From Asterias rubens (taxonomy: Eukaryota): a stretch of DNA of 64,000 bases. A model generated the notes under the pieces. It saw only the letters and a list, made by a program, of their open reading frames with translations, made no database searches and was not told the origin of the DNA. Each line of letters starts with the position of its first letter. The stretch's first letter is position 1. Shown here in pieces: positions 827 to 51,100 of the stretch. A program made the position numbers and the translations under genes. The stretch spans positions 2,852,001 through 2,916,000 of the forward strand of contig NC_047076.1 of assembly GCF_902459465.1 (NCBI RefSeq). Direction: 5' to 3'.

Positions 827-1212
827 AGACACTGGACACTATTGGTAATTGTCAAAGACTAGTCTTCACAGTTGGTGTATCTCAACAAAATGCATAAAAT
901 AACAAACCTGTGAACATTTGAGCTCAATCGGTCGTCGAATTTGCGAGCTATTAATGAAAGAAAAAAACACCCTGTAGCATCATGGTCACACGAAGTTGTG
1001 TGCTTTCAGATGATTTCGAAACCTCAAATTATAAATCTGAGGTATCGAAATCAAATTCGTGGAAAATTATTTCTTTCTCGAAAACTACGTCACTTCAGAG
1101 GGAGCCGTTTCTCACAATGTTTAATACCATCATCCTCTCCCCATTACTCGTCACTAAGAAAGGCTTTATGATAATAATTGTTTTGAGTAATTACCAAAAG
1201 TGTTCAGTGTCT
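827..1212 (+). mobile_element. Kolobok-like non-autonomous DNA transposon (MITE family A)
   Basis: TTAA at 823-826 and 1213-1216; termini AGACACTGG...CAGTGTCT. The internal sequence recurs at least 8 times in the window. TTAA target plus RR...YY termini match the Kolobok superfamily (established knowledge). Confidence 0.8.
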
Positions 1213-1235
1213 TTAAGTGTCTCATGCCTGTTTGT

Positions 1236-4200
1236 TTACGGATTGCAGGGTTTACATGCACACTTCGAAGGCTCCTGTATGACCATCTCCCGGATGTAGT
1301 TTGAAATGCAGACGCCCTCAGCGGTGACACAGTGAGCAAGTTGGATATTGATGGACCTCAGTTCGACCTCTCTACAACAGGTACATTTCTGTAAAATATA
1401 AAATGTAAACGAACATGGTAATTATTTCAAGCTAGGTTTTTAAAAGATTGAATAGAAGGAACGAAGAAGAAGGTAAAAGAAGACCAATAGACCTTATCAC
1501 GCTTTCACCATCTTGGTCATGTTCCCTGTTTCAAACAACATTCATTGCGCAAACGTGGCACCAGACTATTATTTCGTCCTGCCTCAGTGTTGTTACAATG
1601 AGTTGACATGGAGTAAAATCAAGATTGCCACACCGTGATAAAGGTATATTGCCCTGGAAGTTATCAAGTTGATTATAAACACTTCAGGGTCAGAATTAAC
1701 CCGGATCTGGGTCCCGTGGGGCCTGACACATTTATGGGTCAGTTTGACCCGGACTCTGGGTCAAATTGACCAATATGGGTCAATCTGTAGAATGCGCGTT
1801 AAAATCCTAACCACTTTCCAGGTCAGTCTGACCCATAAATGGGTCAGGAACCATTAGACCCGGAATCAGACTCAATTTTAACCCACGAGCCTTTCTTTGC
1901 AGTGTAGGCCCTACCAGAAACAACTCATACTAAAGAGTCTTGGCCTGGAACATAATGCGTTTAAAGGCAGTGGACACTATTGGTAATTACTCAACATAAT
2001 TATTAGTATAAAACCTTTCTTGGTGACGAGTAATGGGGAGAGGTTGATGGTATAAAACATTGTGAGAAACGGCTCCCTCTCAAGTGCCATAGTTTTCGAG
2101 AGTTCGATGACCGATTGAGCTCAAATTTTCACAGGCTTGTTGTTTTATGCATATGTTGAGATACACCAACTGTGAAGGCTACTCTTTGACAATTACCATT
2201 AGTGTCCACTGCCTTTAACATCACATCTTTTGGACATGTGAAGGAATTCACTGACAGTAAAAGCAGACCAGAAATAATATACAGTCAGCATAATATAGCG
2301 AGCACAGTAACAGAAAACTGGAGATACCGTGTCTAACGGTAAACCTATATACATAAGATAGCAAAAAATAATGATCATTAAATTGTCACACAGAGTCTGC
2401 ACAGATAGTTACCTTAAACTCAAATTGGTTTTACACACTATTTATTATATTGACTTTAAAAATCATTGACCACAAGAGCCTGGGAACTAAAGACACTCCA
2501 AGGAATATAATATTGGCTGAAACGTGGTTGTGTGATGGCGAAATGAGGACAAACAGGTGAATCCAGCAGAAAGTCAATTGTGTAAGAATCCAATATTGCT
2601 GGCCTTAATCCAGCCGTGTTTAAAGGACAGCTGTATAGATCTATCAGGTAATGTAGACTGACCACTAAAACCAAGTCAGGTCTTGAGGTGAATCCCTTAA
2701 ACATGAAATAAACACAACCTGGGTATTATTAGGTAGAACTCGTGTGAACTCACAACGCAGCTCCTCGTGCACTTTCTAAAGATCGGCTTAGTAAACCTTT
2801 ATTGTATTTAGCGTCCAAACCAACAGCGGACGAACCGCCAATTTAAAGGAAAGGGACAAATAAAACCAACAAATTCATTCTCAAATTTAAATTTATAAAA
2901 ATAAATTCATAACAGCTAAATAAAATTGCAATTGGTAAAGAAAAAAAATGCATCTATAAAAAATGTCAATAATAGAAGAAGAACAAAATCACAAAAAAAA
3001 CAATCAAAGCAAAACACTGCCTTTGGATTGGGCGATTTGGGCTATACAAAAGCGTTTGTTTTGATGTAGGACAGCTCTGTTTAAAAGAAGATTCACACAA
3101 ATTGTTATATCTCTCGAAATTGTGTGGTTTCCTTTAACTTCGTGAACTAAGACGGTCCTTATTTTTGTCAAAACTTGGTTCTACAAAACAGCGGACTGTG
3201 AACGATTCACGAAGAAAAAAAGAAAACTTCGCAATTTCGGGGGATATTTTGGGTGGATCGTTATATTTATTTATTCTGTTTTTAAAACATTATTGTTAGC
3301 CAATGTCAGCCATAATACTATCTTCATAACGAACACGTTTTACAGCCCAAAAGCACCCAATCCGAAGGCAACGGTGTCCCTTTAAACAAACACCTTGTTT
3401 TCACGGTTGAGTGAAAGGCTGCGGGAGTTAACGCAAACAAGTCGCCCATTCATTCAACAATTCCAAGCTGACCTTTTCCGGCGCGAAAATTCATTTTGTA
3501 TTGATAGTATAAATTGCCGGCGCGGGATTTATTTTTTTCACATTATAAAGAATGTCACGTAAATAGGTTTTGCACTTTTTGCCGGCCATGTACACATGTT
3601 TTGTTCGTTTCCTCATTGGAACAGTCAAGGTGCATTACTAGGTTAGCATGTTGATACCAGTTGCTTCAACAACAATTTTAACCACGTCCAGAAAAATAGT
3701 GCAGCTGAACAGCTTTGCTCTTAAGTTGCCGTTGGCGGCGCTCCACATCTTTTGTAATGAGAAAAACCTGTGATACTCTCGTGGTTATTTTTAAGGTTTA
3801 AATTGACATGCTTTGAACATTGTATCTCTTAGTGCCTTACGATACTAGCTAGCAACTCACTAATTAAGCGCTTGTGTAGTTACTCTGTGTATGAATTTAA
3901 GTAAAAATCAAATTCCCTGACTTCTGAGAAAACATTCTGGAGAAACATAATATACATTTGAAGTGGCCATGGCAAGGTCGTTTACCCGCTGGTCTTTTTA
4001 AAACATAGACTGGTCCGCTTTTTTAGGGAGTTTCCCATTGACTTGTACATAAAAAATACTGACCCCTGACCCCACCTATGCACATATTATTCTTGGGTCC
4101 GCCCCTGGAATTGTTAAATTTTGAATCTCTAGATCATCGATGGAAGACTTTATGATTGCTATCAGTTAGTTTATCCCTCGCTATTTGTGACTATAGTATG

Positions 4201-6760
4201 TTGATATCAGCATTGCCAGTTGTCAAATGTCAGAGTTTTGATATGACGTCCCAAATGAACTCTTGTGCACTTGCAACTTGGATAAATACTTTGGGGTGTA
4301 CGTGAGGGGGAAGGGGCATAATCGCACAAAAGGTAGGGTTGTGTGTTTTCAAAATTTAATGAATGCGTTGGTTTATAAGAAACTATAAATAAGCTCTTCC
4401 TTTAATTCTTATTCATCTTTGCACGGAGCGGAATTTACGGAATAGCCTTCAATTTCGTGAAGATTGTCGCATACAAGATTGATAGTGTTGAGTCTATTAA
4501 TAGCCACAGTGTCCACATGACGCCAATAATTTATTCTAAGCAAACAATCTGATAAAAACCTTCTCAAAAGGCATTCTACCTTTGTGTCGCGTTCCCTGTA
4601 CGCACGTAACAGCTATCAATACTGATTGATTAAGGGGTCGGACTAAAAGTCCCTCGCAGCCTCGATTTGGTTACAATTGATTTGAACGAGTGGCAAAACA
4701 AGATAACTGCTTCATTACAAAAAACCAGTAACTCAAGCTGCTGGCAAGGACGTACAGTGACATGTGATACCGTGTGTCTTTGTAAAAGTACAAGGGTAAA
4801 CACAATGTGTACACGTTTGAATATCAAGTTAGATCGTGTCAGTCTCACCCGTACTCCTTTTTAACCGTCATGATCCCACGTATGTTTCTGTAGTATTGTA
4901 GATACCCAGCCGTCAAAATTGACCGCAAAATTATATAAACACAAAGAGTTTTTGGGGTTCTTGATATCTCGATAGTTGTTTTAACATTCTCAAAATCATG
5001 GTAACTGTACATCATAAAACAACAAAAATAAGTATTTCAAATTGATTAATTTCTGTAGCACACTACGGCCCATAATGTAGCCCAAATACTGTACCTAATA
5101 TTGTAACCCAAAACCTTTTACCTACATTCAGCCTAAAAACCTACATTTAGCCCAAAACCCTTTCCAGAGCTCAACTCCTGTACCTTAAAGTATTCGGGTA
5201 CTTTTTCAAAATGTCCACAGATTTACATTAAACTTACAGGGTTTGAAGATAATATGGTGGAAAGCTTCCCTTCGAATACTACAAACTAGGTTTGTGTAGT
5301 TTTTGAGAAATGAGTAAAACAAGTCACAAAATCATTTTGGTCTCATGAGATCAAAATGATTTTAGCATGTAAAATCCCCTTAACCAGTTATGATATACCA
5401 AAACCATAGCATAACTAATAATACGTTTTTACATGCTAAAACTGAGACGAAAAATATAACTTTTACTCATTTCTCAAAAACTACAGCTCCTCGGTAAGTA
5501 AAATTTCAAGGAAAGCTTTCTACTATCAAAATCTTCAAACTGTGTAAGTTTAATGTTAAGCTGTGGACATTGTGTTTTTTGTTAGGAAAAGGTACATATA
5601 CCCTTTAATGTAGTCCAAACCATGTACTCAACTTAAGTCCAATCATTTACCTAAATGTAGCCCAAAACCTTGTATATACATTTGCCCAAAACCCTTATCA
5701 AAATGGAGCCCAAATTACCATAGCCCAAACCTATATCTATACATTTTATCGGTACATGGCCCGGCTATATTGGGCCCCATGCTGTGTGAAAAAGGAAGTC
5801 AAAAAGTTAAAGTTGATTTGAAATTCTGAAAAACGTTTTGCACCAAAGTATCAAACTAGCAATATTGTTAAGGGATCTGTTTTTACCCATAACAATTGTA
5901 GGTTTTGGCCAGAGTGAACAGTGGATATCGGTTACTTAAAGCCTTTGTGCACTTTCGGTACAGAAAAAAAAATTAAAAAGTTCACAGATTTTCAAACAAC
6001 TTACAGGGTTTACAGAAGGTAATGGTGAAAGACTTCTCTTGAAATATTATTCCGTGAAATGCTTTTCTTTTGAGAAAACATTAAAACAATATCAATTCTC
6101 GATATCGAGAATTACGAATTATTTTAAAACACATGTCATGACACGGCGAAACGTGCGGAAACAAGAGTGGGTTTTCCCGTTATTTTCTCCCGACTCCGAT
6201 GGCCGATTAAGCCTAAATGTTCACAGGTTTGTTATATAAGTTGTGTAGGCCTTGGACAATACTGTTTACCGAAAGTGTCCAAAGTTTTACCTAGTGATGA
6301 ATTTGAATAGTCTTTGTTGCTCTTATATCTACAATGAAACCAAAGGTGCTTGAGCAATAACTTAAACATTTTAAAACACTGACATAAATTTCCTTCATCA
6401 GGGGTTGCATTTTTCAGGCAGATGTCGTTGTAGTTGCATCTCATCGCCTCTTACCTTTACAAACCCCACAGAAGCAACGACACTAGGAGCCACCGACGAC
6501 ACGCACTGTCCCTCGCAACTCGTCAGCGTCACGTTACCGCGACATCGTAAATAATCACCCGTCTCTTCATCAACAAAACGCCGGTCAAGTTCGATACTGA
6601 TCGTCTCCAGTCCGCAAAACTGCTGCAGAGAGGCAGAGACCTGGCCGCCAGCCCGCTGCTGGTGGTGCTGAAAGGCAGTCAGTAATAAGCAAAGGAATAA
6701 TAGACGGACTCCGCTCGTATTAGATAATGAAGTAGCCTGGTTCCGATGATGGGCTAACAT
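1236..6760 (-). CDS. Bursicon-beta-like cystine-knot hormone, paralog 1; join(complement 6455..6760, 1236..1388); 152 aa (alternative upstream ATG at 6787)
   Basis: Exon 1 encodes a hydrophobic signal core (VRLLFLCLLLTAF) and C-x23-C-x8-CEGQC...SVGFVK, then donor AAG|gtaaga at 6455/6454. Exon 2 follows acceptor tattttacag| at 1389/1388 and reads KCTCCREVELRSINIQLAHCVTAEGVCISNYIREMVIQEPSKCACKPCNP-TAA. The intron is phase 0 and about 5 kb. Cys spacing fits the bursicon beta subunit (family pattern recalled from memory). Confidence 0.85.
1965..2214 (-). mobile_element. Kolobok-like MITE family A, internally deleted, reverse orientation
   Basis: TTAA|AGGCAGTGGACACTATTGGTAAT...ATTACCATTAGTGTCCACTGCCT|TTAA. 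Confidence 0.8.
3005..3385. mobile_element. Old, degenerate relative of the fold-back MITE family D
   Basis: Ends resemble family D (actgcctttggattggg...cccaatccgaaggcaacggtgtccctttaa); internal ctcgaaattgtgtggtttcctttaact block. Confidence 0.5.
5189..5604 (+). mobile_element. Kolobok-like MITE family C
   Basis: TTAA flanks (5185-5188, 5605-5608); inverted subterminal blocks aatgtccacagatttacattaaacttaca / tgtaagtttaatgttaagctgtggacatt; second copy at about 10381-10770. Confidence 0.75.
5940..6285 (-). mobile_element. Kolobok-like MITE family B (one end degenerate), in intron of bursicon-beta-like 1
   Basis: Near-identical to copies at 9436, 11212, 33019, 48274 and 58032. Confidence 0.8.
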
Positions 6761-7886
6761 TGTCACAACTGTTTTACAACCACCCATTGGTAAAATGAAT
6801 AATAATAAATCCAAGTGGCTCAGCTTGAAACAGCCAATTCAAACTAGTGATAAAATATTTAAGCTTTGCTCCTCACAAACCTTCAACTTCAACACTCAGG
6901 CTGGTAATAAATCCATCCATAATGGTTTAGATGAGTGGTCAAAAATGAGACGAGACTAAACAAAAAACTGCGATCCATCAATGAATCGAGCATACGTGCG
7001 AGGCCCCCTGTGTTGCTTCTGTGGGGTTTGTAAAGGTAAGAGATACAAAATTGCGTTCGCGCATGGATGACCTTTTATGGATTACGGGGAAGGCCGAGGA
7101 CGATGGGACGAGGACGAGAGAAGAAGAAGAAAAAAAAAAGAAAAAAACACACACAAAGGAAAAAATAAACCGAAGACAGCCGGTGATGAGTTATGGTTAG
7201 GAGTGGGTTGGTGTAGAGGGTGGCTGATTCGATGACCTTGTACCGGGCGAAACGCCGAGCGAGACGGCGATGGTTTGCCGCTGCCAGTGGCGTCCCGGAA
7301 AGCAAGACAGTCTTTGATTCATTTATCGTAAATAAACAAAGTGCACACTTTACACCTTCGGGCCAGCAGTAGGAGATGAACACCGTGGTGTGACGGGATT
7401 TAAGTTGAATCCAACACTGTTTTCAAAATTACATACATACTAATATTACTCAGCAAAAAAAAAAAGGAAACAGAAAAACCTCAATGACAAACAGGTACCG
7501 TGCACCGACACTGCGTAGAACGTTAATCTGGATTACAAATCCGGATATGCGTGTATAAGTTTAATTAAAATTGAGTTCGCGATATTTCAAGTTCAAGAAC
7601 GCGGCCCCTTTATTTATCGCGTGTTTGACATTTTAAGTTTTTCGGCCTACTGTATTTGTGGACAGGTGAAAACAAATAGATACATTTCTGTCACCTAGAA
7701 ATTAAAGAACGTAAATTTATTCTGTTTATTATTGGTGTATCGCAAGACGTAATAAGGAATAGAATTTGAAATTGTCCAGGGCCCATGGTAGAGTTGATAC
7801 AGCATGCGCTGGTTTTGTTTGGGTACCCATTCTTTAGGCAGTCGACTATTGTTTTCCTTACTGCTACTGTTACTTTATTTTATTAA

Positions 7887-8270
7887 AGGAACACGTTGCC
7901 TTGGATCGGTCGAGTTCGTCTTTGAAAAGCGTTTGTAACCGTTTGTTATAAAATGTATATGGTTAGAAAGACGTTTAAAAAGTAGAATACAATGATCCAC
8001 ACACATTTGCCTCGAAATTGCATGGTTTTCCTTTTACTTTGCGAACTAACAGTACACGGTCGGCCATTTATGGGAGTCAAAAATTTGACGCCATGAATGG
8101 CCGACCGTGTTTGTCGACGAGGTAAAAGGAAAACCACGCAATTTCGAGTGATACTTTATACTTGGATCATTATACTTTTAAAATATCTTTCCAATCATAT
8201 GCATTTTATAACAAACTGTTACAAACGCTTGTCAAGGACCAACTCGACCGATCTAAGGCAACGTGTTCCT
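7887..8270. mobile_element. Fold-back (palindromic) Kolobok-like MITE family D
   Basis: TTAA|AGGAACACGTTGCCTTGGATCGGTCGAG...CTCGACCGATCTAAGGCAACGTGTTCCT|TTAA; left and right halves are reverse complements along most of the length. Confidence 0.85.
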
Positions 8271-9435
8271 TTAATTGATCCATGAAATGGTCTGTATATA
8301 CGTTTGGTAATGACTCTGAAAACTGACGTGGTAGAAGTCTTTCAGTTTTGGATACTATCATGCATTTTTAAAACATTTGACTTCGAATAACTACGGTACT
8401 TTATGGAAAAAGTAATCACTTTTTATCCCCCAAAAATTAAATAAAGAAGCGATACCACGGATCTTCCTGCGTGGACATAGTCGCTCAAGAGTTTCGGCGA
8501 TATCTCAACTTAACGCGATCACCTTTCGAAATGAAATGGTTCACATTATATTATTACAACTACATTTATGTAGGATTGTAACAACCGACAGTTTCAAAAA
8601 TCAAAGGTGCCTTTAAGTTGGTTCATTATTTTAGTATTGCCGGTTGGTTGTTTTTGCAAAGCGCTGTTGTTCGACGCTCGATGAATAAATTGAGCAATTT
8701 TTGCCTTAGCTTAAAGCAGTTTTATGGAGCTGTACCTTGTCTCTGTTTGAAAATATCTCTCTGAAGTACTTAGCAATCCACTAAGCAATATTGTTTGATC
8801 CAACACCTACGTAATGAACTTATCCAGCCCCCTCCCCAAACCCAAACCCAAGGGTCCCCCATCTAATTATAATTACGGACAGTTGAAGTTGTCTTGTATT
8901 GAATGCAACAAAATGTTTGTGGAAAATTTACAGAAGATTGTTGGTTGGTAGCTATAGCAACCCCATAGATCTAGGATTTTAAAAGATCAAACAAGTGGGC
9001 GTCCGGGAGGGTCGGGGCAAAAAGGCAATTTGCTTTAGACTTTGGGGCCGGTTTGTTAATAGAGTTACGTGTAGTTTACCATTAATTTAGGCGTGGGTGG
9101 AGAGAGGCGTGTACTGCTAGTGGCGACTCCGTCCGTGTACGGCCGTGTAATGACCCCGTGAAATGGACTGTTGCATTGGATTGGTCGCTTTAGGCTATAA
9201 AATGTGTTAGTTGTTAAAGGCACTGGACACGTTTGGTGATTGCCAACAACCAGTATTATCACTTGTATACCACATAATAATTTATCTATAAATTGGTTAT
9301 CTAAGTTGCATATGGATAGTGAAAGAACCCTTGTTGCACATAACTTCAACACGGTCTGCTATTTTGTTTCAAAACCTAATAAATTCATAACAATTATTAA
9401 CACGTTTCTCAACGGCGACGTCCCCTAAGTATTAA

Positions 9436-9759
9436 AGCCATTATACACTTTCGGCCCAGAAATTTTTTTAAAGTTCACAGATTTACAAATAATTTACAGG
9501 GTTTACAGGTGAAAGACTTATCTTGAAACATTATTCCATGAAATGCTTTACTTTTTGAGAAAACATTAAAACAATATCAATTCTCGATAGCGAGAATTAC
9601 GGATTTATTTTAAACACATCATGACACGGCGACCCGTTCTTTTCTCCCGACTCCGATGACCGATTGGGCCTAAATTTTCACAGGTTTGTTATTTAAGTTG
9701 CGGTACAAGAAGTGTGGGCCTTGGACAATACTGTTTAATACCGAAAGTGTCCAATGGCT
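9436..9759 (-). mobile_element. Kolobok-like MITE family B
   Basis: TTAA|AGCCATTATACAC...GTGTCCAATGGCT|TTAA; preceded by an older family-A-like fragment from about 9215. Confidence 0.85.
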
Positions 9760-10380
9760 TTAACGGAGAAAAAGGGGAGTCATCGGTTATGTCCGGCCGA
9801 TCACCTTTTACAAAGTGTGGACCAAGAGACAGGTCCACCACAGACTGAGGTACATCACGTAAGTGTAGGAACTTAAATACTGTATGGACTGACGACATAC
9901 ATGTTCGTCCACACAATTATTCATACAGTGTTGAAGATTTTTGTGAAGTGTACAGAACAAAGAAATGTCCACAGAGACAACATTCTATTAGCTGCGTTGG
10001 GGGGGGGGGTGATACTTGAATAATTTAATTTGTGCATAATTTTCCGCGGCTTTATTTGATTGCTTGACAAACGTTTTCAACGGGCGGTCTCTTCTAAAAA
10101 TCAATGACGTACCATGATGTCTAATCAATAATGTAATCCCATCCCAAAACTATGTTACCACAATGGTAAAATGTGTGTAGCGCCCTCTCTTGGCGCGATC
10201 AATCACTTAAATCTGCCATCCGTACTGGTCAACCGGAGACGAGGGCGCCGTGTTAATGGCGCATTAGCCTGGTTCAATAGCCTACACGTGCCACTTCGTT
10301 GAAAAGAAACCAATTGTGACAACTGCTTGGCTTGCATAGTGGCATTAGCTTGGCTGTACGGTAAACGTATAGCCTTTCAA

Positions 10381-10770
10381 AAGGGTCTTTTTTATTGTAC
10401 TTTTTGTAGGACAAAAGAACACAATGTCCACAGATTTACATTAAACTTACACAGTGTGAAGATAATGATAGTAGTCAGCTTCCCTAAAAATATTACTTGC
10501 TGAGGTGCTGTAGTTTTTGAGAAATGAGTACAACAATGTCATGAAATTAATTTAAGGCTCAGTGATCATGAGACGAAAATTATTTTCGCATGTAAAAACG
10601 TATTTTCATGACATTGTTTTACTCACTTCTCAAAAACTACAACACCTCAGCAACTAAATACTTTAAGGTACATTTATTAAGCTTTCTACTATCATTATCT
10701 TCAAACGGTGTAAGTTCAATGTAAATCTGTGGACATTGTGTTTTGTGTTACAAAAAGTACCCAAATCCTT
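10381..10770 (+). mobile_element. Kolobok-like MITE family C
   Basis: Homologous to 5189-5604, with the same inverted subterminal blocks. Confidence 0.7.
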
Positions 10771-11211
10771 GTGAGGTCGGTGTAGTGTAGAATTTAACTT
10801 TCCGGGTAAGTTTTTCCCCTCCACTTTTTATAGAGAATTGTTTTAAGTCCATACCTCCAGCTTCCCTTGTAAGTTTGTTCATGAATGTTTTCCTCCTGCA
10901 ACTTTACAAGAGTGACTTTTATCCTTATTTGTGGCAAATTATTTTAGAAGCTGACAAACAAAACAGTTTGACCATTTTTCACTCTACACGCAACAGGTTC
11001 ATCAGCCGCTTTATAAAGGTAGTATTTGAACTCTCGCATGATCATCAAGGGCAACATTTGTCTCGCGAGGTCTCATCCTCCTGTACGCGAAACATCATCC
11101 TGATAACAAACAATACACAAGATAATAACAAAAACTCGTGTTTTTTTCTTCAAATAAATTTATTGACTTAAAGTGAGTTTCAGAAACCTTTTTCGTCTCG
11201 TCATCGTTTAA

Positions 11212-11575
11212 AGCCATTGGACACTTTCGGCAAACAGTATTGTCCAAGGCCCACACTTCGTGTATCACAACTTCTATATAAAATAACAAACCTGTGAAAA
11301 TTTAGGCTCAATCGGTCATCGGATTCGGGAGAAAATAACGAGAAAACCCACCCTTGTTTCCGCACGTTTCGCCGTGTCATGACATGTGTTTAAAAGAAAT
11401 CCGTAATTCTCGGTATCGAGAATTGATATTTTGTTTTCGTTTTCTCAAAAAGTAAAGCATTTCATGGAATAATATTTCAAGAGAAGTCTTTCACCATTAC
11501 CTTCTGTAAACCCTGTAAATTATTTGTAAATCTGTGAACTTTTTTTTTGTTCTGTACCGAAAGTGTATAATGGCT
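11212..11575 (+). mobile_element. Kolobok-like MITE family B
   Basis: TTAA|AGCCATTGGACAC...GTGTATAATGGCT|TTAA. Confidence 0.85.
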
Positions 11576-14089
11576 TTAATGCCATGCAGTTTTATGCAAT
11601 TACCAGATAAGGTTGTTCCATTAAAAAGTAAACGTTAAACACCATACCCTTCCAAAAAAATTCTCAATTAATCCATCTTCCTAAATATCTTATCTCTTTG
11701 GGACAGCATCTTGCTCAACGTCTTGCATCTAACACACCCTAATCGCGGATGCAGCATTTCACAACAGAGAAAAAGAAGAAAAAAAATGAACCTTTCCCAG
11801 AGAGACTTATTGAACACTCAGTCGCGTAACAACGACACTATGAAATCCACACTCGAGCTTGAGAAATGAAAATCTAGCAACATTCTGACCAAAAAAAATC
11901 TTGCATAATCAAGCCTCGTATTATGTTACAATTCCATTCCTTCGTTTCGTCCGGGGGGCTTTCTGGACGCGCATAATGGGTACACTGTCTTATTGTCCCA
12001 CTTTGTCAATGTCTCAAGGGGTTTAACAAGTCTTTAAAGAGACCCAAATTAGCGGAGTGATTTTCTCGCCGCGGTGCAACCTCAGATTTACTTTAAGTCA
12101 GGGTGACTTCATATAAAAGACAAAAACAGATTAAACTGTTTTAATTGCATAGGTTATTAATAGTGCCGGTTTTCATAACATCTAAATTGTGACTTTATGG
12201 TAAAGTACCTATAGCAATGTGTTTTAATCTCTGTTCGCCGTTTTAAATCTCTGTCATCTTGTGTCTGTTTCCTTACCCATCCTGTTATTGATGAAGTTTG
12301 CGCTGTTGGATGTGGCTGAAACAAAACAATGAAGTAGATCGAAATGAAACATTAAGCACCCCCCCCCCCCCGCGGTACAAGACGCGTGCGCAATATTATG
12401 ACATTACTTTTAGCAGTTATTTTCAGTAACGTTTTTTGGCTTGGTTTTGTTCTTCGAATTACATGACATACAGAAACCAAGACACAGTTTTTTGTTGCAT
12501 TTTAGTCAGTGTGGACATTCCCTTGTTCTTTACACTTCAAGAAAATCCCATTCTTCAACACTGTAAAATACAAAAGAAAAAAAATGTCCTAAAATGTCCA
12601 CATAGTGTTGCAAGATGTGGACTTCTTTTGTTCTCATCAGGTCCACCCATCGTATTAGCGTTATAAAACCTTGCCGTATGCTATGGCTATAATCCACAGA
12701 CAATTGGAAACAATGAAGGAACGCGACATTTATTCTCTCCTATATTATTCTTTTCTAAAATACTAAATCTAAATACTAAATACTTTCTCTATCGTTAATA
12801 CGTGCACTTAGACCGCACTGCACAGCTAGACATCCGGGATAATTGAACAATATCAAGTATCAAGCCAGTAAGTGCAGTTTCACTTAACTGAGTTCATTGG
12901 CAAAATGTCAGCATATTCTTGAGATGTTTTTCAAGAAGAAGGCCTTACATCTTTAAGACGGGATTAGCCATTGTGTAAGACACCCTCTTATCAGCTTCAA
13001 CCGCTTTTAAACCCTTCGAGATAAACACTCACCTTTTATCAGTACGTCGGCTCGCTCGCGCAAGCAGTCTATACTCCCGCGGTTTATTTTTTTGCCAATA
13101 CTGTATCTTGTATCGTTTCGGTTGTAGTCCTTTATTTAATTCATCTCAATAAAAGAGATGGGAAGATTGTCCCATCTATATTAGGAATGTAGCCTCGTGC
13201 GACAATGATGTGACATGGGATGTCCCGTTCGGGGAAAACAGAAATAAGAAAACGAGGAGGAGGTTGTGAGCGACTTCTTGTGGAGGAGAGATTGTGTGAT
13301 TTTCTTTGGAGAGCAAACAGTGGCGAAGGAATTGAGCAACAGCAGCAACTGAATTATTTTGTAAGTATTCACGGTTAACGTTCACCAATGATATTAAGCG
13401 TTGATATTAATGTGTGGATATTAGCTATTTCAGTGTTGGATTTATTGGGTGGGGTCTGAGCCGATCGTAAATTTGAAACTGAATTAGTTTGTAAGTATTT
13501 GTTGTGTTCACCAATTATTTTGATATGTTTAGATATTCTTTTTTAATTTACGAATATATTATAGGTATTTTGGTATAAGATTTTACTCTGTGAGTGAACT
13601 TAGTAAAAAACTTGTTTGTGAATTTGAAACTGAATTATTAGTAAGTGTTGAATGTGTTCACCAATTATATTTTAATAAGTTGTGATATTTTTAAAATATG
13701 TGCGAACATATAGTTTTTCAGTATAAAATTTTACTCTCTGAGTAAAATTAGTAGAAAATATACTCTTATTGTAAGGGATCCGAACGTGAATTTGAAACAA
13801 ACTGTATGAATCAAAGTGTGTGAAATACACAGCGAACGTGAAGCGTATTGTGTGTGGGGTAAAAATAGGCATTTGTTTGTTTTCAAAGACAGTTCCGTAT
13901 GTTCTACCGTCCCTCTCATAACAGCCATGTACTTTCTGTTACATTTCAAATCGGCAGTCACACTGAAAACCATCTGCAGCTGAAAACACAATATAGGCCT
14001 ATATCATTTTAGCAACTATTTCGTCTGATGTCACAGATCGGTCGAAGAAATATTACTCTTGGTCAAACCTACAATCTCATAATTATACA

Positions 14090-14400
14090 TAATTTATGAC
14101 CAGACAAATTCATGCTCTCGTCACTGAACTGAGTATAATTGTTTCTCTTTTCTGTTAAGATTTTGTGAATTGCTATAGCTCCAATCTCGTCATGGATAAA
14201 GATCCATTATGAACAGTCTTATTCATGCTTTCTGAACCTACATTTTGTTTTCTCTTTTTACCAAGATTTTGTGAATTGTTAACTCCAATCTCGTCATGAA
14301 TTTACATAATTTATGAACAGTCGAACTCATGCTTTCTAAGTGACATATTTTGTCTCTCGTTTGAACAAGATTTTGTGAAGAAACTCCAACCTCATCATGG
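14090..14400 (+). repeat. About 100-bp tandem triplication containing splice acceptor plus ATG of bursicon-beta-like 2
   Basis: Unit aag-attttgtgaa...ctccaa(t/c)ctc(g/a)tc-ATG, with ATG at 14192, 14296 and 14397. Confidence 0.8.
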
Positions 14401-15993
14401 ACTATACCAGAACTAGACCCTTCCTCATCATCAGCTTTCTCCAATGTCTTCTGGTAGTAGTCACCGCCCAGCCCCAACCCCAATCACTGGGTCTTCGACG
14501 GGGTGGGGACCCGGCCTGGCGTGGTCGGCCCGGACGCTGCGTGTTAACGTTTCAGGATATCGAAGTGCAGCGTCAGGTTGAGTTGCTGACCGGGGAAAGG
14601 GCGGTTTGTTACGGCACCGTTACGGCGTCGGCTTGCGAAGGGGAGTGTATGTCATCCTCGCTCTCTACTCTTCATAGTGCAACCGGTTTTATCAAGGTAA
14701 AACAAAGAGGCAATTTATTAAGTTGCATTGAAGCTAATTGAAGGGTTAACACGTAACATGACGAATGCGTCTTGTACTTAACTCTTAACATTAATAAGGA
14801 AACGATAGTTATGTTTTTATTAACAAGTATTCTTATTAAGTTCATTTTTGTTTTAGGTCAATACTAATCCATATTATGTTGGTTTTGAATGCATTCAAGA
14901 GAATTTGCATGAGTGTTAGCCTACACTAATACATAATGGGTACGTTTTTTTTAGCACAACAATAATCATATCCAAGCTGCGACGAACACTTCAGTTGCGT
15001 CTGTATTTTAGAATTTGGTCTTTGAAAAGTGTTTTGTAATCGTTTGTTATAAAATGCATATGGTTAGAAAGCTGATTTAAAAGTAGAATATAATGAGCCA
15101 CACACGTTTGCTTCGAAATTGCGTGGTTTTCCTTTTACTTTGCGAACTAACACGGTCGGTCATTATTTTATAGTAAAAAAATTTGACTCCCATAAATGGC
15201 CGACCGTGTTAGTCGACGAGGTAAAAAGAAAACCACGCAATTTCGAGTGATACTTGTGTGGATCATTATATTCTACTTTTAAAATATCTTTCTAATGCAT
15301 TTTATAACAAACGGTCAGGCCTACAAACGCTTTTCAAAGACCAACTCGACCGATCCAAGGCAACGTGTTCCTATAAAAGAAAGTAAATCATATTCATTTT
15401 GGTTTTACCCGTTAATGAATATTCAGTATCCCCGATGCTAAACGTAAAGTAAAGTAAATCACACGACAACAATTATTATTGCAAACTACTACAAAACAAC
15501 ATCAAGTTCCAATCATCATTTTTCTTGTGTGGGCACAGCTTGTTTTTTCTGCTCTAATTATGACGATTCGCCCATCCAGAAATCCCAATAGGTAGACAAA
15601 AATAGCAGTAGTGGGTGTTACATAATTTGAAAACACGTGTACAAGTCAATGCAGTCGATCCAACTGTGTGGGTTAACATTATTGAGTGACTCGGGACACC
15701 TACAATACATAACAACCAGTCATTGATGATTCCACGTCTGTAACACCTGCTTGTCCACCTTGCCTACGCGCTCATTTTAAAATATCTCACTTTTTATTTA
15801 TTTCCATCGTCCCCTGACACCTCTTTCCCGCCAGAACTGCACCTGTTGTCGTGAGACCCAGATGACGTCACATACCGTAGTCTTGTCTCCGTGCTTCGAT
15901 GTGGACAGCGGCGATTTGATGGCGGGAGCGGAGTTTGTGGAAGAGTTCCAACAGCCGTCGGGTTGTGACTGTCAAACATGTACTATTTCATAG
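14397..15993 (+). CDS. Bursicon-beta-like cystine-knot hormone, paralog 2; join(14397..14696, 15835..15993); 152 aa
   Basis: Signal peptide (FLIISFLQCLLVVVTA), then C-x22-C-x8-CEGEC...TGFIK and donor AAG|gtaaaa at 14696/14697. Acceptor ctctttcccgccag| at 15834/15835, then NCTCCRETQMTSHTVVLSPCFDVDSGDLMAGAEFVEEFQQPSGCDCQTCTIS-TAG. 11 Cys in the mature domain; same intron position and phase as paralog 1. Confidence 0.88.
15015..15373. mobile_element. Fold-back MITE family D (5' end eroded), in intron of bursicon-beta-like 2
   Basis: Homologous to 7887-8270 and 53795-54175. Confidence 0.8.
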
Positions 15994-16128: not shown

Positions 16129-16717
16129 GCCCGGACGCTGCTGCATAATGCATTTGTGTCCGCCCGGCTACATTTGCATATGCAGTTTGTGTCCGCCCCG
16201 TGCAAAACCGTCCTTGCAGTAAATTAAACGCCCTTGCTCGACGAAACACGTTCGCCATATGATTTTTTACAAGCTATTGTACATGATGTTCAGCCGTTGG
16301 GTGATCGCTGCAATCATAAAATACGTGAATATTCATACTGCAAAACATGTAGGTAGGTTTAGTGCATGCACGCTCGCTAACGCGCGCCCATACAGTCATG
16401 TACATGTCCTCCGGACGGTTTTTGCATAGCCCCGGACACGATTGTATATGCAAAAGTGCCGGAGCGGACAGTATTTTATGGCGGACACAATTGAATCTGA
16501 CACCTATTAAGGCATACATTTTGATCTTCACTATACAACTTGCCCAATTTCAAAAAGCCTATAAGCACACTTGCTTAATGCCGAACACACAGCTCTTGCT
16601 TATCAAAACTAGGTTACCAGGCTGGAAACCAAACAGTTACAATTGCTTCGACTGGGTACCACACTCATTTCATGCTTAGCATATTTTTCTGCTTAACAGA
16701 ATTATGACAGTGGGCCC

Positions 16718-16880
16718 CCGAGTACGATTTCATAGAGCTGCGCACGGAATGTCGCTAAACACGCTTGCCAGAATGATTTTACCAGTGTGTAAAATCTGCG
16801 ACTGGCATTGAGCTCATTATTATTGCTTAGCAGAACATTGTCAAGCAATATTTTCTGCCTGAGCAGCTCTATGAAATTGG
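16718..16880. mobile_element. Harbinger-like MITE family E (degenerate)
   Basis: atttcatagagctg ... agcagctctatgaaattggg terminal inverted repeats; the window also begins with the same terminus (1-20). Confidence 0.55.
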
Positions 16881-17159
16881 GACGTTGTCCTTATTTAAAT
16901 AAATAAACACAAATTCAACATTTGTTTTTTTGTTGCTCTTTCCGTTTTAATGTTTCAAGTTAAAAGTTCAACAGTTCAACTTGACAAAGTGTTCTTGTCG
17001 TAGCAGCATTTAATGATGAGGGAATAGTAAGTTATATAAAGGTGGTTTCTGGCAACAAAAATCATGGTTTCATAATTCAATATGTTTATGAAAGTATTAC
17101 ATTATAAAATAAATTATTCCCTTTAAACTATTTTGGACACTGGTTTGGTTATAAGCGTA

Positions 17160-17447
17160 AAGGCACGGAACACGTTTGGTAATAATATTACTTGAATCAT
17201 GTACACATGTATTAGTATAACAATAATTACTTGGTGACGAGCAACGGTGGGCTGTGACTACCTCTGCTGAAGTAACTCAATTTCTCACTGAAAAAAAATC
17301 GAATCTGAATGAGGAAGACTTCAAGACTGAAGCCTTTCTCGGGCATCTTAAAGCACACAATTTCACTGATTTCTTTTAAGCACATGTTGAGATACACAAA
17401 ATGAGAATGCTATAGTCTTTGACAATTACCAAACATGTCCAGTGCCT
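17160..17447 (-). mobile_element. Older Kolobok-like MITE (family A relative)
   Basis: AGGCACGGAACACGTTTGGTAAT...ATTACCAAACATGTCCAGTGCCT termini. Confidence 0.6.
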
Positions 17448-18099
17448 TTTAAAGAAAGGGAAAACAAATTCAAAGATAAAGTTCATTGCAAAAACCTGGA
17501 TGTTAAAATTGACACCATGGGTGTTTTTATCGAAGAGAGAATCAAAATTACCATCAGATGGTGTTATAAATTAAAATAACACAATTTTTTTTATTTTTGT
17601 TTAACAAATTGTTATTTTAACAATCTTTGTTTTTCATGTTGATTTCTCTTAGGTTTTGGACAATGTTATACAAATAATTGATCAGAAATATGATACTCTT
17701 TTATGAAAGTCAAAACATCATTGTTTATAACATTAAAACATGTTGTCAATTGTATGTCGGTGTGGCAGGAGGCGATGGTCGACATTTTGTGTGATAGCGC
17801 CCTCATGGCTCAAATTCATCCAGCCCATGTTAATTTATCGTATGGGGGCATGGAGAGACAGATACACTGGGGTTGGGTATCCCCTGCCACACCGGATATT
17901 ATAAATACGAACAAAGAGTTTGGTCCATAAATGTTATGGAAGTCAACAAACATTGTCATTCTTCTTGTGTTGCTCTTTCTTTCGAACCATTGGTGTGCTG
18001 TGTGACAAAATGCAACTTGTTTTTCTTCTGGGTTTTTTCAACTGGTTTTGTTCAGAGCCGCTATTGTAGGCATGGAATCAATCTATCCATCCGGCTGGC

Positions 18100-18370
18100 C
18101 TGAAAATGTAATATTGACTGACTCGTACAGAGTGAAAAGTGCTTGTACCAAATTAAAAGTACTTGAACTTACTAAAACAGAAAGTCGGACCGACTGACTG
18201 AAATGAACTCGTATTGCCTTAAAAGGGTACTTGTACCCAGTGAAAAGTACTCATACTTAACCGACTGAAAAGTACTTGACTTACTAAAACAGTTTACTCA
18301 AACTGATTGCAAATTACTTGTACACGTACATGTACTAATACTAAAACAGGTACTCTTGCTGAAATGTCAA
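18100..18370. repeat. Degenerate minisatellite
   Basis: Recurrent aaaagtacttga(a)cttactaaaacag and ccgactga blocks. Confidence 0.5.
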
Positions 18371-19070
18371 CACAAAACATTATTTCAGGTGATACAAATA
18401 GATCCATTTTAAACAATAAACCCTTTTGTATGAATTGTCCTGTTGTTTATGACTGTCTGAAGCCAAATTCGTTGATAAAGACACTGTGTTATTACGGTTT
18501 ATGGCTTCAGTGGTTCTCATTGAGCGTAGCCAGAGGCAATGGTTATTTATTTGCTTAGCAAGTTGGATCTGCTGAGCACAATCTAGCCAGAAACCAGTCA
18601 AAAACAGTATATATTACGTAATCCATATTAAGCTAGTAAGAATCCGGCCAGGGTTAGCCAAAGTGTGCTTAATGCACCGCTCAAATACTGCTTAGCTACT
18701 ATATCATTCTTGCTTACCCGTACAATTATGCACTAAAAAATCTGAGGTCTATGCCATATTCCCTTTCTCATAGCAATGTTCTGCGCAATTTCTTTCAGTA
18801 TCACGCCCCAACATCATAGGTAAGGGAAAAAAATCATTAACAAAAAATTCAAATTATTTTGATTTCTTAGAATTACATTCCCTGATGCTTGTGAATTTCT
18901 TGTACTAAAATTTTAAAATCTCTTATGCTCTGAGCTGAAAAGAAGATTACTTTTTATACATAATACTAAATTGATTTTAGTTGAAGATTATTTGGACCCT
19001 TACAGGGACAGTTGAACACTAGAATACTCTCTGATTAGCCTTACAGTTAAGAGGTCACACTGGTACAGTC

Positions 19071-22000
19071 TCAAATGGCGTACTTCTTCTTGCCGTTGTC
19101 ATTGATAATACAGATGTGCTGTAAATAAAAAATAGGGAGAACAAAATTCAGAAATGCACTAATTACAAGAGGACACAAGAGGGGGCTACTTACACTTAAT
19201 GGAAGTTAAACTAATTTCACATGTACTGGATGTGTACAACAAAACATGAACTGATCTGGTTCCAGGTTTGATTTGCTGCATAACGCATATTGCGCCAGAG
19301 AACCTTGTAAACCAATACATGGTGCTATGTAAAGGAATTGGTCTCATATTTCAAAAAAATAGCTCCACAATACCTTGCACAAAATAACTTACTGAAATAA
19401 TGAGCGCTATACAAGAAGCCGCTATTATTGTTATTTCTTTTAACCCCCTCCTATTCTTGGTATCATTTTCCAGGGAGTTGGCCAACCAACTGAAACAATT
19501 TATAGGCACAGCCTGTGTATGGCGGCAGAAATGTGCACAGAACAAACTAATGAGGCTGGCATATTTTATCCATAATTCAAAATCACAGGGGATTATATTA
19601 AATGGTCAGGCAGTAGGAGGGTTGACTTTGTACTTTGCAGATGGGCAATTCCGAGCAAACATGGCCATTACACCAAAAAATCACAAGTTTCTTTCCACTT
19701 AGAAGTTATAGCTAACATATGAAACCAATTTATTTTTAGTTGTTGACACGGAATGAACCCAATATTGCCAAATAAGAACTCAGCTTGGGCTCCATGTAGG
19801 CGTGGCTTAATTGACTGGAAAGCAGTATGCGACTGACCGTAATGTGACTGACCATGGTTTTGCCATGTATACCTAAAAGTTCAAGTTGCTGACCATTTAT
19901 AAGTATCCTGTTGGATACTCATGTATAAGAGTTGTTTGTTACATAATAGTAACACTTTTGCAAGCTTTTGGGGTTGAGGAAATTTTTGAATTATGAACAG
20001 TTTTTTTTTTTACCATGTCATTTTATGTAATGCGACTGACCGCTTTTTACAACGTTATAACATCCAGAGCACAAAGCCTACAACATTTCTAATATCATCA
20101 GTTCAAAGCCTTGGGTGTCAAGTACAAATCAGTCTATAAACTTAGTGGTAAGAATATCTAACATAGAACTTCTAGCACCAAGATCAAGAAATGACACAAA
20201 AAAGTGTAATGCGACTGACCATGGAATTGCCCAGATGCATTCAACCTATGATACTATTTCAGATTGCCAAAGTTTCATTGAAAGGCGGATTAAAAAAGGC
20301 AAAGAAAAAGTCATCAAAATTGACACTTACACTGAGATCTCTGAAGTACTCATTGTAATCTAAAGCATAACCGACCACAAACTTGTCTGGAACTTCAAAA
20401 CCAATGTCTGCAAAAACCAGATCATGAAATGTCAGATTATCACAAGTGACAAACAAAAAAAGGAGAGGTTATAATAAAAATTAAAATTTATTTAAACTGC
20501 GCCAATTCCAGGCAAACCTGTTCAAAGGCGCATGACAATGAATGATAAAAATATTAAACCATTTAACCATCTAGGAAGTATACAATAAAATATAAAAATA
20601 CACAGTGTTTAAAATGCAGAGAACCCTAATAATTACAAAAAGAGATGACCAAAATTAAAGGATGTATCTTCCACTAGGAGCCTGGTTAGTAGAGCAGAAT
20701 GTACTACCGTCCAACCTGTTTACAAGGCGTAAAATGCCTTGCTCAAGGACCAAGCTTTGCCAAGTTCCCTTCTTGGGAAGATCATTTAAACAACCAACAA
20801 ACAAAAGCCCGAGTTGAAACCAACATTCATAAATACCTAAGACAGTTTCGCTATTCCTATTGGTGGAGAGTGCGTCACGTGGGGGTGTTTAAACCTTTGA
20901 TAATGACCAGTAAAAAGTGTTGAAACATAGGCGTGACACGTGAGCTTGCACCTGTGCTTATAAGACAGTTTCGTCATTCCTAATGGTCAAGAGCAACGGC
21001 TGGAACAGTTGTACCACATCACGCGATACGCGCGACGCGCACAGCATTCCCTTATAAGGAGTTGTTTACCCGAGGGCCTTACCATTTCATAGCTGGAGGG
21101 GTGTTGTGTTGAAAGAAATTATTGAACAATTATAATTTTTGCTTTTATTTTATTTTTTGACAAAAAGTGTTTTGACCGAAAAGGTATTTATGAATGGGAA
21201 TCAAAGTGTGTTGAATCGGTTTTCAACTAGTGGTTTAAACCCACCGAGGCCTGCTTCTTGATAATTTACCTCAACTTCGTCTCGGTAAAATTATCAAGAA
21301 CCAGGCCTCAGCGGGATTTAACCACTACTTGAAAACCTCTTCACCACACATTGACTCCCTTAGTTCTTTTCAGATCCACCCAAACTGATTTAGAGATTAT
21401 CATTACATGGTGTTACCGCATACCTTTCTATATCATATTTCCACCATGCAAAATTTCAAATCCTACTGAAACAATAGCCTGTTCAGTTAGATACTTACAA
21501 TCCGGACGGTAACCCACACTCCTGGGTGTCCTCTTGACTAGGAGGCTGGCAACTTTAACACTCGATGGGTTATGTTCAGCAATCAGCTTTAGCAGCCTCT
21601 TCATGGTATTACCAGTATCAACAATATCCTACACGTAATGAAGAGAGAGATTCTTAAATCATTGACGTTGTCCGAACTATAGTCTAGCCTGTCCAACTGT
21701 AGTACTAGTCTAGAGTACAGACCTAACTTTGGCTGGGTAAATCCCAACTGTAGTTGGACAGTTCCAACTTGGGTTTGACATTCCCAACAGGGCTCATTTT
21801 AATGTACAGAAATTGAGAAAGTTACTTAACATGAGACTGATACTTTAATACAGGTAGCTTTGTCATTTTCCCCATTTGAAATAGTAATAGTACATACAGA
21901 TCCCAGATATACAGATGATCTGAGGTACATTGTCGCAGTCTTTAATACCTTCTATCAGTCTGGGCAATAAATATTACACCAGTTTGAAATTATAGCAGAC

Positions 22001-33400: not shown

Positions 33401-34121
33401 TTTCATGTAGTGCACTAAGCTAAATTAGTCACAAGAACTATCTCTACCCTCACAGGTACTCAATTACCCCTGGTTAATGAGAACCAGCTATAGTTAAATG
33501 TCTTGCTTAAGGACACAATTGTCATGACCAGGATTCGAACCCACACCTTTATGACTCATCAGCAACCAGATCTTGAATCTAATGCACTAAACATCTCGGC
33601 CAAGACATACTTGTTATTTTCATTTTTAAAGCGGGCCTTGAACGTTGCTATTGAAGAGGCATGGCAGTTTCCCTCTGGTAAGGAGCGCTTCTACATGTAT
33701 GAGGAAAATGTAAATTTTGTTTTGGAACTTTGCAAAGAGCACCACAGCAACAGCACAGGGCACCACAGCAATTGCTGCAGGTGACGTTGGGTTTTCGAGC
33801 CCTATTAAAGTAAATAATTTGTTTCCACTCTGTTTCATGAAACAGGGCAAGTTCATCAACACCGGCCTATGGAGCGTCAGCCGTCACCCCAACTACCTCG
33901 GAGAGATCCTGATATGGTCAGGTCTCTACATCTCCGCCTCGTCAGTCATGTCCGGTAAGCAGTATCTTAGCGTCATCTCCCCCATCTTCGTCTACTTCCT
34001 CCTGACTCGGGTGAGCGGCATTCCCCTGCTCGAGAAGTACGGCCTGAAGAAGTGGGGGAGCAACCATATGTATCAGAATTACCTTCAGAAGACCCCGGTG
34101 TTGTGGCCGAAGCTCTGGTAG
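30486..34121 (+). CDS. DUF1295 family integral membrane protein (steroid 5-alpha-reductase/ICMT-like superfamily); join(30486..30600, 31343..31448, 31788..31894, 32171..32343, 33846..34121); 258 aa
   Basis: Motifs KTEKFYDLAGSG, WALRLGMYLFSRIMGDGEDRRF, FWTVQAIWVW, EATADYQK, GLWSVSRHPNYLGEI and VSGIPLLEK; all junctions GT-AG and phase-compatible. Confidence 0.9.
32386..32756. mobile_element. Kolobok-like MITE (AGATGCTATGT termini)
   Basis: TTAA|AGATGCTATGT...ACATAGCATCT|TTAA. Confidence 0.75.
33019..33380 (-). mobile_element. Kolobok-like MITE family B
   Basis: TTAA flanks at 33015-33018 and 33381-33384; homologous to the other B copies. Confidence 0.85.
33400..33607 (-). mobile_element. tRNA-derived SINE fragment
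   Basis: Minus strand reads tcttggccgag (A-box-like)...gggttcgaatcc (B-box)...gtgtccttaagcaagacatttaac, a typical SINE head-body junction; no acceptor stem or CCA. Confidence 0.65.
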
Positions 34122-49660: not shown

Positions 49661-51100
49661 AAACGATCGATCTACAATACAATAGTCAAGACGAACGCTG
49701 ATCGCAGCTGATATAAAGTGATTGTCAGTAGGGGTCAAACATATTGTCAAACTTTTACCTGACCTCGTGCTTTGTTTTTGTTTAGACTTTATTTATCGGC
49801 AGTGTATCTGGAAAGCCTTCACACGAATTTAACACTCAAGGTTTTCAACTTGGTTCTACGACTGTTTTGGAAGCGAATTCGGCCGTCAGGTGTTACTTGT
49901 AGCCACACACGAAGACGTCTTCAAGAACACTGAGCCCGGAAGGTGACCGTATAAGAAATGAGATAGGAACATGAATTAATCGTATATCATTATATCTATG
50001 AGGGAACTCGAAACTGTTGATTTCAACTGTAAGAATACCGACGAATAGGATTACAAGAAACCACTCATCAAACAGTCGTATACTCAAATTGAATTTCAAG
50101 TTCAGTGTCACGTCCTACCGACGACTAGGATTACAAGAAACCACAATACCACAACCATAATACACTTCGCGTGATAGAGGAACTATAGTTTGATGACAAA
50201 CGGTACATCCGGTCTTAAGTTATCCGCTATAATTCCTGTCCTCAAACCCAACCATAACTTAATATTGCATGCTGTACAAAATTAGTTGGTGTCACCTACC
50301 TGTAGCATTATAGCCACCTGTGTATGATGTCAGTTGTCACATAGTTGTAAAAGGTCATCTTTTAAAATAAAGGCAGGAGTCAGTGCTGATCTACCAGGAC
50401 ACAATACAATAATTCGGAAATGGTTTGACAGTAATGCAGCCTTGTTCTTGAAGTATATAACTATAGCCAGCGCACACCTGTTGACATTAATAATGACATG
50501 ATCAATCGATCGACTCCTTTGTTATTGAACAACAATCGCTCTCAGCAGATAGGTGTTCAACGCAACTGTTAAATGTTCGCCAAACAGCCAATCGAAACAG
50601 CAAAAGTAATCTTGAACATTATTGTCTGACTTTGAGGTCAAAAGAACAAGGCTGCGATCGATACAACCTGTACTTTCAATTTCACTTTCACCAATTCATT
50701 CATTCATAGCTCACACTCAGACCGTTGAGGCACTGCTTGTCAGCTACCACCACCCGTGACATCACTGGTCGTGTACCACCCCGACTATCTGCCGGAAACG
50801 CAAGTAAGAAGCAGTCAGATATTATGAGTACGACTGTGTAACTTTACTGTGCATTAGTTGTATTCGTAAGCTCGTCATATTGTGCAAAGGTCTGTGGAGC
50901 AGTTATTATGGCTTTTGTTTACCTGCATTGAATTTCAAGGACCGGCATTCTGTGCAGTCTGTGCGGAAAGTGTCTAATGCTTGCAGAGCTATTGGCTACC
51001 TATTCGGACGGTCCCGGTGAGTGATTTTTGTAACAGAACATTTTGAACACTGCGTTTGGACTTTAAGTTGTATCATTCTCACACAAACTTGAAATTGACC

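Follow-up and report, generated by a model that had tools for sequence, protein, structure and literature searches.

A head-to-head pair of bursicon-beta-type genes in a three-gene cluster of the sea star Asterias rubens

The closest described counterparts of the genes considered here encode the subunits of bursicon, a hormone that in arthropods drives cuticle tanning and ecdysis through the receptor LGR2. Insects have one beta gene (Pburs, partner of bursicon), the product of which pairs with one alpha subunit and acts on LGR2/rickets. Among echinoderms, one alpha and one beta subunit have been published for sea stars, sea cucumbers, sea urchins and brittle stars, according to our full-text searches. 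A 2016 study of the starfish radial nerve cord reports one precursor of each type, ArBAP (139 aa) and ArBBP (142 aa) (PMC4772807), while two alpha-type and two beta-type precursors are known from the crinoid Antedon mediterranea (PMC9793003). Each echinoderm species, bar one brittle star, is reported to have one orthologue of the bursicon receptor (Veenstra, PMC8286064), and what bursicon does in these animals is not known (PMC4772807, PMC6586643, PMC9793003). Here we describe two genes, A and B, which are transcribed divergently in a stretch of 64 kb on chromosome LR699106.1 of the sea star Asterias rubens (GCA_902459465.3, approximately 2,852,001-2,916,000). This whole stretch is referred to as the window, and positions given without an accession are counted from its first letter.

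We consider it likely that A and B are two functional bursicon-beta (Pburs) paralogues, that they form a cluster of three with the gene for ArBBP, and that the last common ancestor of Asterias and Patiria had this cluster. This reading is carried by five kinds of evidence obtained here, on the structure of the genes, their family assignment, synteny, purifying selection and the transcription of gene A.

Gene structure and family assignment

Re-translation and alignment reproduced exactly the layout that a first reading of the window had proposed (hereafter the original prediction), namely two divergent two-exon genes with their coordinates, phase-0 introns, motifs and inter-cysteine spacings, and 7.6 kb between the start codons (Table 1). 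Gene A lies on the minus strand and gene B on the plus strand; each has two coding exons, and both introns are phase 0 and follow directly after GF[VI]K, the exon 1 donors being GTAAGA in gene A and GTAAAA in gene B. The spliced product of gene A is identical to RefSeq XP_033640065.1 (P0005), and that of gene B to XP_033640069.1 (P0003). A length of 152 aa had been given for each protein, which is correct for gene B; for gene A it applies only to translation from a second in-frame Met, at 6760 inside exon 1, whereas the RefSeq form starts at the first Met and has 161 aa. Both genes were thus already annotated in RefSeq, under the automatic name 'partner of bursicon-like', but no paper describing them was found. 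Neither the sea-star A/B pair nor a three-gene cluster is mentioned in any paper returned by our full-text searches, which leave most subscription journals outside their reach.

Both proteins have a hydrophobic core near the N-terminus, at residues 29-39 in A (LLFLCLLLTAF) and at residues 11-21 in B, and in each case the AlphaFold model puts an N-terminal helix there. In 53-sequence alignments all 11 framework cysteine columns are invariant, with spacings of 23/8/3/17/1/0/14 in A and 22/8/3/17/1/0/14 in B and with the motifs CEGQC and CTCCRE in A and CEGEC and CTCCRE in B. Between them, A and B share 35% identity over about 105 residues (BLASTP). The mature domain of A has 12 cysteines and not the 11 of the framework: the extra one, C138, lies within AEGVC (Asterias) or DEGAC (Patiria), is kept in gene A of both Asterias amurensis and Patiria, and is absent from every other beta sequence examined. 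An NVT sequon stands immediately ahead of CEGQC in A and is common to the Patiria orthologue of A and the Amphiura protein. In gene B, the loop between Cys8 and Cys9 is longer and acidic, and the N-terminal linker has no counterpart in the shorter Patiria B protein. A separate small peptide cut at the RR site of this linker was considered as a further product of gene B and rejected on that ground.

To assign the family, A, B and the Patiria orthologue of A were combined into a profile, which was searched against 1.84 billion representative proteins. It yielded 94 matches; all of those reaching the motif have the beta pattern (CEGxC, CxCC[RKN][ED]), and the alpha pattern occurs in none. By BLASTP, A and B score 62-70 bits against arthropod beta sequences and 25-35 bits against arthropod alpha sequences, and ArBBP shows the same contrast. 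AlphaFold2 single-chain models of A and B, built on the 53-sequence alignments, have a mean pLDDT of 83-84 and reach about 89-98 over the knot domain. When searched against Swiss-Prot, both models had 'Partner of bursicon' as all of their top four fold matches (E 8.5e-12 to 4.9e-11 for A and 2e-9 to 9e-9 for B), compared with E 2e-6 to 1e-3 for bursicon alpha. Fold matches in the PDB included Norrin, the Norrin-LGR4 complex, the Caenorhabditis elegans LGR ligand alpha2/beta5, PRDC, gremlin and NBL1. A phase-0 intron between ..G[FY]xK and xCxCC is common to A, B, ArBBP, the three Patiria genes and the beta genes of Amphiura, Strongylocentrotus purpuratus and Saccoglossus. Profile search, BLASTP and fold matches therefore all bear out the claim that both genes are of beta type and neither is of alpha type.

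An ordinary alpha/beta bursicon pair, one member of which had been misread as beta, would not be without parallel, as alpha and beta genes adjoin in some arthropod genomes and two of the profile-search proteins, P0029 and P0045, are beta-alpha read-through fusions. However, the hallmarks of alpha, a short Cys1-Cys2 loop (~13 residues) and CxCCQE, are present in ArBAP and in the arthropod alpha parts but in neither A nor B. Both have a long Cys1-Cys2 loop (22-23 residues), CEGxC and CTCCRE, and for both, matches to beta surpass those to alpha by 4-6 orders of magnitude. Moreover, the actual A. rubens alpha is a different protein, ArBAP, the published supplement sequence of which has the alpha pattern with its short first loop and CQCCQE. 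We regard the misreading as refuted by loop length, motifs and the preference for beta matches, and assign it a negligible probability.

Other searches returned little. Neither the exons nor the full-length proteins of A and B had a significant match in Pfam or NCBIfam; this silence is uninformative for the bursicon family, as a canonical arthropod Pburs (P0035) is likewise without a match. A sequence search of the PDB gave one weak match only (8enb_B, E 0.046), and word-indexed homologue searches retrieved sea-star proteins only. Six-frame motif scans found no other cystine-knot hormone exon in the spacer between A and B or in the rest of the window.

Synteny and age of the three-gene cluster

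The original prediction left open whether A or B might be the bursicon-beta already catalogued from this species. Neither is: ArBBP (KT601727, XP_033639410.1 / ALJ99969.1) has the beta pattern but differs in sequence from both, and its gene occupies 2,793,168-2,801,512 of LR699106.1, ~52 kb from gene A (2,853,236-2,858,787), with which it shares its strand. Because ArBBP is distinct from A and B and lies at this short distance from them, A. rubens carries three clustered beta-type genes, in the order BBP - A <-> B.

The same gene order and orientation are found in A. rubens, A. amurensis and Patiria miniata (Table 1); in Patiria the gaps are 40.6 kb from BBP to A and 5.8 kb from A to B. As order and orientation are kept in both genera, the cluster and its head-to-head pair predate the Asterias-Patiria split, which agrees with the earlier suggestion of an old duplication. 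Among living sea stars no split, or hardly any, is deeper than this one, which dates back on the order of 200 million years. Thus, the triplication predates crown sea stars. When Asterias and Patiria are compared by blastn, nothing of the locus aligns apart from the exons of A and B (exon 2 of gene B at 76.6%), and no conserved non-coding block was detected, spacer included. Between A. rubens and A. amurensis, identity is 96.7% in the segment 13557-14715, which takes in exon 1 of gene B and the region upstream of it, and 88-91% in most of the remaining compared region.

The persistence of the divergent layout bears on a different possibility, that A and B partner each other in an alpha-independent beta/beta heterodimer, a sea-star-specific hormone whose two genes are arranged divergently for co-regulation. 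We consider this unlikely, although it has several points in its favour. The layout, with a spacer of 5.8-8 kb, has been kept in three species across the deepest sampled sea-star split; on the other hand, such a spacer far exceeds a classical bidirectional promoter, and the lack of any non-coding block shared by Asterias and Patiria also speaks against co-regulation through it. In sequence, A and B are slightly more alike (36-42% identity) than either is to BBP (30-37%), but the tree described below neither supports nor rejects them as sisters.

We also searched for an alpha gene at the locus. None was found in the 64-kb window, in the 10 kb on either side of each of the three beta genes in A. 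rubens and Patiria, or in the whole of the ~55 kb between A and BBP in A. amurensis. The published ArBAP must therefore sit elsewhere in the genome, and the absence of an alpha subunit that was originally noted is true of the window and flanks searched but not of the species.

A maximum-likelihood tree was constructed from 57 beta domains, with one arthropod alpha part as outgroup; this outgroup is a single very long branch. A, B and BBP fall with the beta sequences of Amphiura, Antedon, Apostichopus, sea urchins and Saccoglossus in one ambulacrarian clade (support 87/69). Within the clade only orthologue pairs and a Saccoglossus sister pair are resolved. The best tree joins A with Amphiura (support 75/55), the gene of which locally resembles gene A (GNVTLASCEGQCVS against GNVTLTSCEGQCVS). 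Five groupings (A+B, A+BBP, B+BBP, A+B+BBP and A+Amphiura) were compared by approximately unbiased (AU) tests and none was rejected, A+B having p-AU 0.25. Given an alignment of ~105 columns in which no grouping is rejected, the trees cannot date the duplications relative to the other echinoderm classes, and the description of the expansion as lineage-specific could not be upheld. Pairwise identities between paralogue groups are all 30-42%. On these comparisons, the duplications appear to have arisen within ambulacrarians, before crown sea stars.

At the loci examined, sea stars alone showed the head-to-head A/B pair, and the Amphiura, S. purpuratus and Antedon genes examined have no second beta gene within 10 kb. 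Saccoglossus kowalevskii has a tandem of two beta-type genes (XP_077863738 and XP_077863739), both on one strand and ~9 kb from each other (GL012226.1, 808,128-831,441). As these two are sisters (97/95), the duplication in Saccoglossus is independent.

Table 1. Positions of the beta-type genes and their parts in Asterias and Patiria
Feature	Position	Strand	Remarks
Gene A coding exon 1	6455..6787	-	window; putative signal peptide and Cys1-Cys4 of knot domain, GFVK at end
Gene A intron	1389..6454	-	window; 5,066 bp, phase 0, GT..AG
Gene A coding exon 2	1236..1388	-	window; KCTCCRE... through stop codon; carries 12th cysteine
Spacer between divergent start codons	6788..14396		window; 7.6 kb; ATG-to-ATG 7,610 bp
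Gene B coding exon 1	14397..14696	+	window; putative signal peptide, linker, Cys1-Cys4, GFIK at end
Gene B intron	14697..15834	+	window; 1,138 bp, phase 0, GT..AG
Gene B coding exon 2	15835..15993	+	window; NCTCCRE... through stop codon
Patiria miniata BBP	7,095,091-7,102,904	-	scaffold JADOBP010000029.1
Patiria miniata A	7,143,510-7,147,087	-	scaffold JADOBP010000029.1
Patiria miniata B	7,152,883-7,154,546	+	scaffold JADOBP010000029.1
A. amurensis cluster			B(-), A(+), then BBP(+) ~55 kb further on

Some further features of these loci may be recorded. For the A. amurensis orthologue of ArBBP (in the stretch CP134967.1, 14,696,987-14,768,192), RefSeq gives an isoform X1 of 158 aa whose first exon lies far upstream; with this isoform the gene model extends over 51 kb, its start being only 12.5 kb away from gene A, and the 142-aa isoform starts at position 52440 of the same stretch. 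In Patiria miniata, a gene with a phosphoribosyltransferase domain (PF00156) is located ~5 kb beyond gene B, at 16699-21664 of the retrieved stretch. Elsewhere in the A. rubens window there are three intronless open reading frames for rhodopsin-family G-protein-coupled receptors, at 37978-39060 (-), 44065-45138 (-) and 51056-52249 (+) (Pfam 7tm_1, E 1e-39 to 4e-43). They are mutually 40-47% identical, a small family of neighbours at a distance of 22-36 kb from gene B; having no leucine-rich-repeat ectodomain, they are not bursicon-type LGRs. A reading frame at 33717-34121 (+) matches DUF1295 (E 3e-28), with weaker matches to the PEMT and ICMT methyltransferase families, and is probably one exon of a multi-exon gene.

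Selection and transcription

Neither A nor B has lost its reading frame or splice sites in any of the three species. In the comparison of A. rubens with A. amurensis, the ratio of non-synonymous to synonymous divergence (dN/dS) over the whole coding sequence is 0.26 for A and 0.05 for B, and over the knot domain 0 for A and 0.09 for B, all four values being based on small counts. Between Asterias and Patiria dS is saturated, and knot-domain dN is 0.20 for A, 0.31 for B and 0.32 for canonical BBP. These values indicate purifying selection on both genes.

To examine the transcription of gene A, RNA-seq reads and contigs were aligned over positions 1000-6999 of the window. In X11, a declared RNA-seq run from a related species, exon 1 is covered at ~7-15x and exon 2 by 10-19 reads at positions 1299 and 1347, compared with ~0-1x over the unique part of the intron (2400-4999); a second RNA-seq run, X12, has no reads at the gene A exons. 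A contig from X2 aligns to 6791..6455 and ends exactly at the donor, its 35 further letters not continuing into the intron, and 1249-1383 of exon 2 are also covered by a contig from this run. In X17, a run guessed to be RNA, a contig of A. rubens type spans 6561-6831 without differences to the window, from which it follows that the gene A mRNA includes the first ATG. Gene A is thus transcribed, and the pattern of coverage fits the predicted splice.

For gene B the evidence of transcription is indirect. All sampled words of its exon 1 are present in run X1 (guessed RNA), and 0.33 of them in X4, a declared metatranscriptomic RNA-Seq run.

The runs also bear on whether A and B are produced together, as a dimer of the two would lead one to expect. 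Words of both genes occur in X2 and X3, small runs of one sample from a related species. Against this, X1 contains all of the gene B exon 1 words and none of gene A, and X17 contains 0.58 of the sampled words of gene A exon 1 and is not listed for gene B. Joint expression is therefore not obligatory; the runs hint, weakly in view of the low depths, that one gene may at times be expressed without the other.

One or both copies might instead be decaying or silent duplicates that are still called by gene predictors. It could be said for this that the nerve-cord transcriptome study mentions neither of the two and that the contig collection includes no full-length spliced transcript contig of either protein. 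Nevertheless, all three species retain intact frames and splice sites, dN/dS stays well under 1, dN does not exceed that of canonical BBP, the RNA-seq coverage of gene A is limited to exons and exon 1 of gene B is present in a metatranscriptomic RNA run. We therefore hold decay or silencing to be very improbable.

Alignments over the gene A region also show high-copy repeats, at 1000-1200 just downstream of the gene and at ~1800-2400 and ~5000-6400 in its intron, where RNA-seq depth reaches 10^3-10^4x. Joints between opposite strands connect ~1011 with 2101-2109 and 1988 with 2159-2177. Depth and joints together suggest foldback elements, or elements resembling miniature inverted-repeat transposable elements, that are transcribed genome-wide.

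Proposed function and comparison with known systems

Each gene would give rise to a secreted cystine-knot subunit of ~105-125 residues. As both proteins combine a hydrophobic N-terminal core with the full 11-cysteine framework of the Norrin/CTCK type, they would be expected to be secreted and to form disulfide-linked dimers. These dimers may act as ligands of the leucine-rich-repeat ectodomain of a bursicon-type (type B) LGR, the likeliest target in view of the homology to insect bursicon and the resemblance in fold to LGR ligands. Secretion, dimerisation, choice of partner and receptor are all things that we infer for A and B from such likenesses. With regard to partners, the arrangement that we favour, tentatively and with slightly less than even confidence, is that A, B and BBP serve as alternative beta partners for the one known alpha, ArBAP. 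This would mirror the vertebrate glycoprotein hormones, in which several betas share a common alpha, and the three resulting hormone variants would differ in the site or time of their production, or in potency.

Several observations weigh against A and B as functional paralogues of this kind. The 2016 study sought bursicon-type precursors and gives ArBBP as the sole beta-type one (PMC4772807); given that report, A and B may be non-neuronal or expressed at low levels. There are three betas for reportedly one alpha and one receptor, and additional heterodimers may not differ functionally. Furthermore, the twelfth cysteine of gene A departs from the canonical framework and could alter dimer chemistry.

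The same cysteine could also be read in favour of a dimer of A with B, as it could provide an additional inter-chain bond. In its most specific form, this proposal would make the A/B heterodimer a sea-star or eleutherozoan hormone in which C138 forms a lineage-specific inter-chain bond and which acts through the single bursicon-type LGR or through another receptor; we consider this form somewhat less probable than mutual partnership of A and B in general. Doubtful to a greater degree is the proposal that A and B act without alpha as homodimers, or as ligands or antagonists outside the LGR system, either resembling antagonists of bone morphogenetic protein (BMP) or having an immune role. The models do match PRDC, Gremlin-1/2 and NBL1 in fold (E 4e-4 to 9e-3), a separate immune activity of insect bursicon homodimers has been reported (PMC5320557), and three betas face one bursicon-type receptor reported per echinoderm species. 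Both proteins are, however, much nearer to Pburs than to the DAN family in sequence as well as in fold. Sharing of ArBAP among A, B and BBP remains the pairing that we prefer.

Among known systems, ArBBP offers the nearest comparison. It shares with A and B its chromosome, two-exon layout, phase-0 intron after G[FY]xK, cysteine framework and the motifs CEGxC and CxCCRE, but is only 30-35% identical to them. It is also the most conservative copy, with 42% identity and 84 bits to arthropod beta, compared with 30% and 64-69 bits for A and B; judged by these scores, A and B are the more derived copies. Insect Pburs (e.g. Drosophila Q9VJS7) is the best fold match of both models (TM 0.62-0.71) and has the same 11-cysteine spacing and motifs, although it is 22-31% identical to A and B, and where insects have one beta gene, sea stars have three in a cluster.

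More distant are the Norrin/CTCK ligands of LGRs (5BPU; 9KHH, Norrin-LGR4; 8END, C. elegans alpha2/beta5), which share the fold (Foldseek E 3e-4 to 1e-3) but at ~20% identity are not orthologues of A and B. Norrin shares the pattern CxGxC ... CxCC ... CxCxxC, in which the CxC and the last cysteines form inter-chain bonds. It binds a type-B LGR, and its homodimer also binds Frizzled-4.

The sea-star cluster bears on the role of bursicon in animals that do not moult, which is unknown. With three betas for one published alpha and reportedly one receptor, it raises the question of which dimers exist and whether their activities differ, and a functional study in A. rubens on ArBBP alone would miss two-thirds of the beta repertoire. 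For comparative endocrinology the finding is incremental. The new hormone system that had been envisaged is better described as an expansion of a known hormone-subunit family: A and B are additional members of that family, in a cluster arrangement previously undescribed in the papers found. The duplicates of Antedon and Saccoglossus indicate that duplication of the beta subunit recurs among ambulacrarians; the Saccoglossus pair lies on the same strand, 9 kb apart, whereas A and B of sea stars stand head to head.

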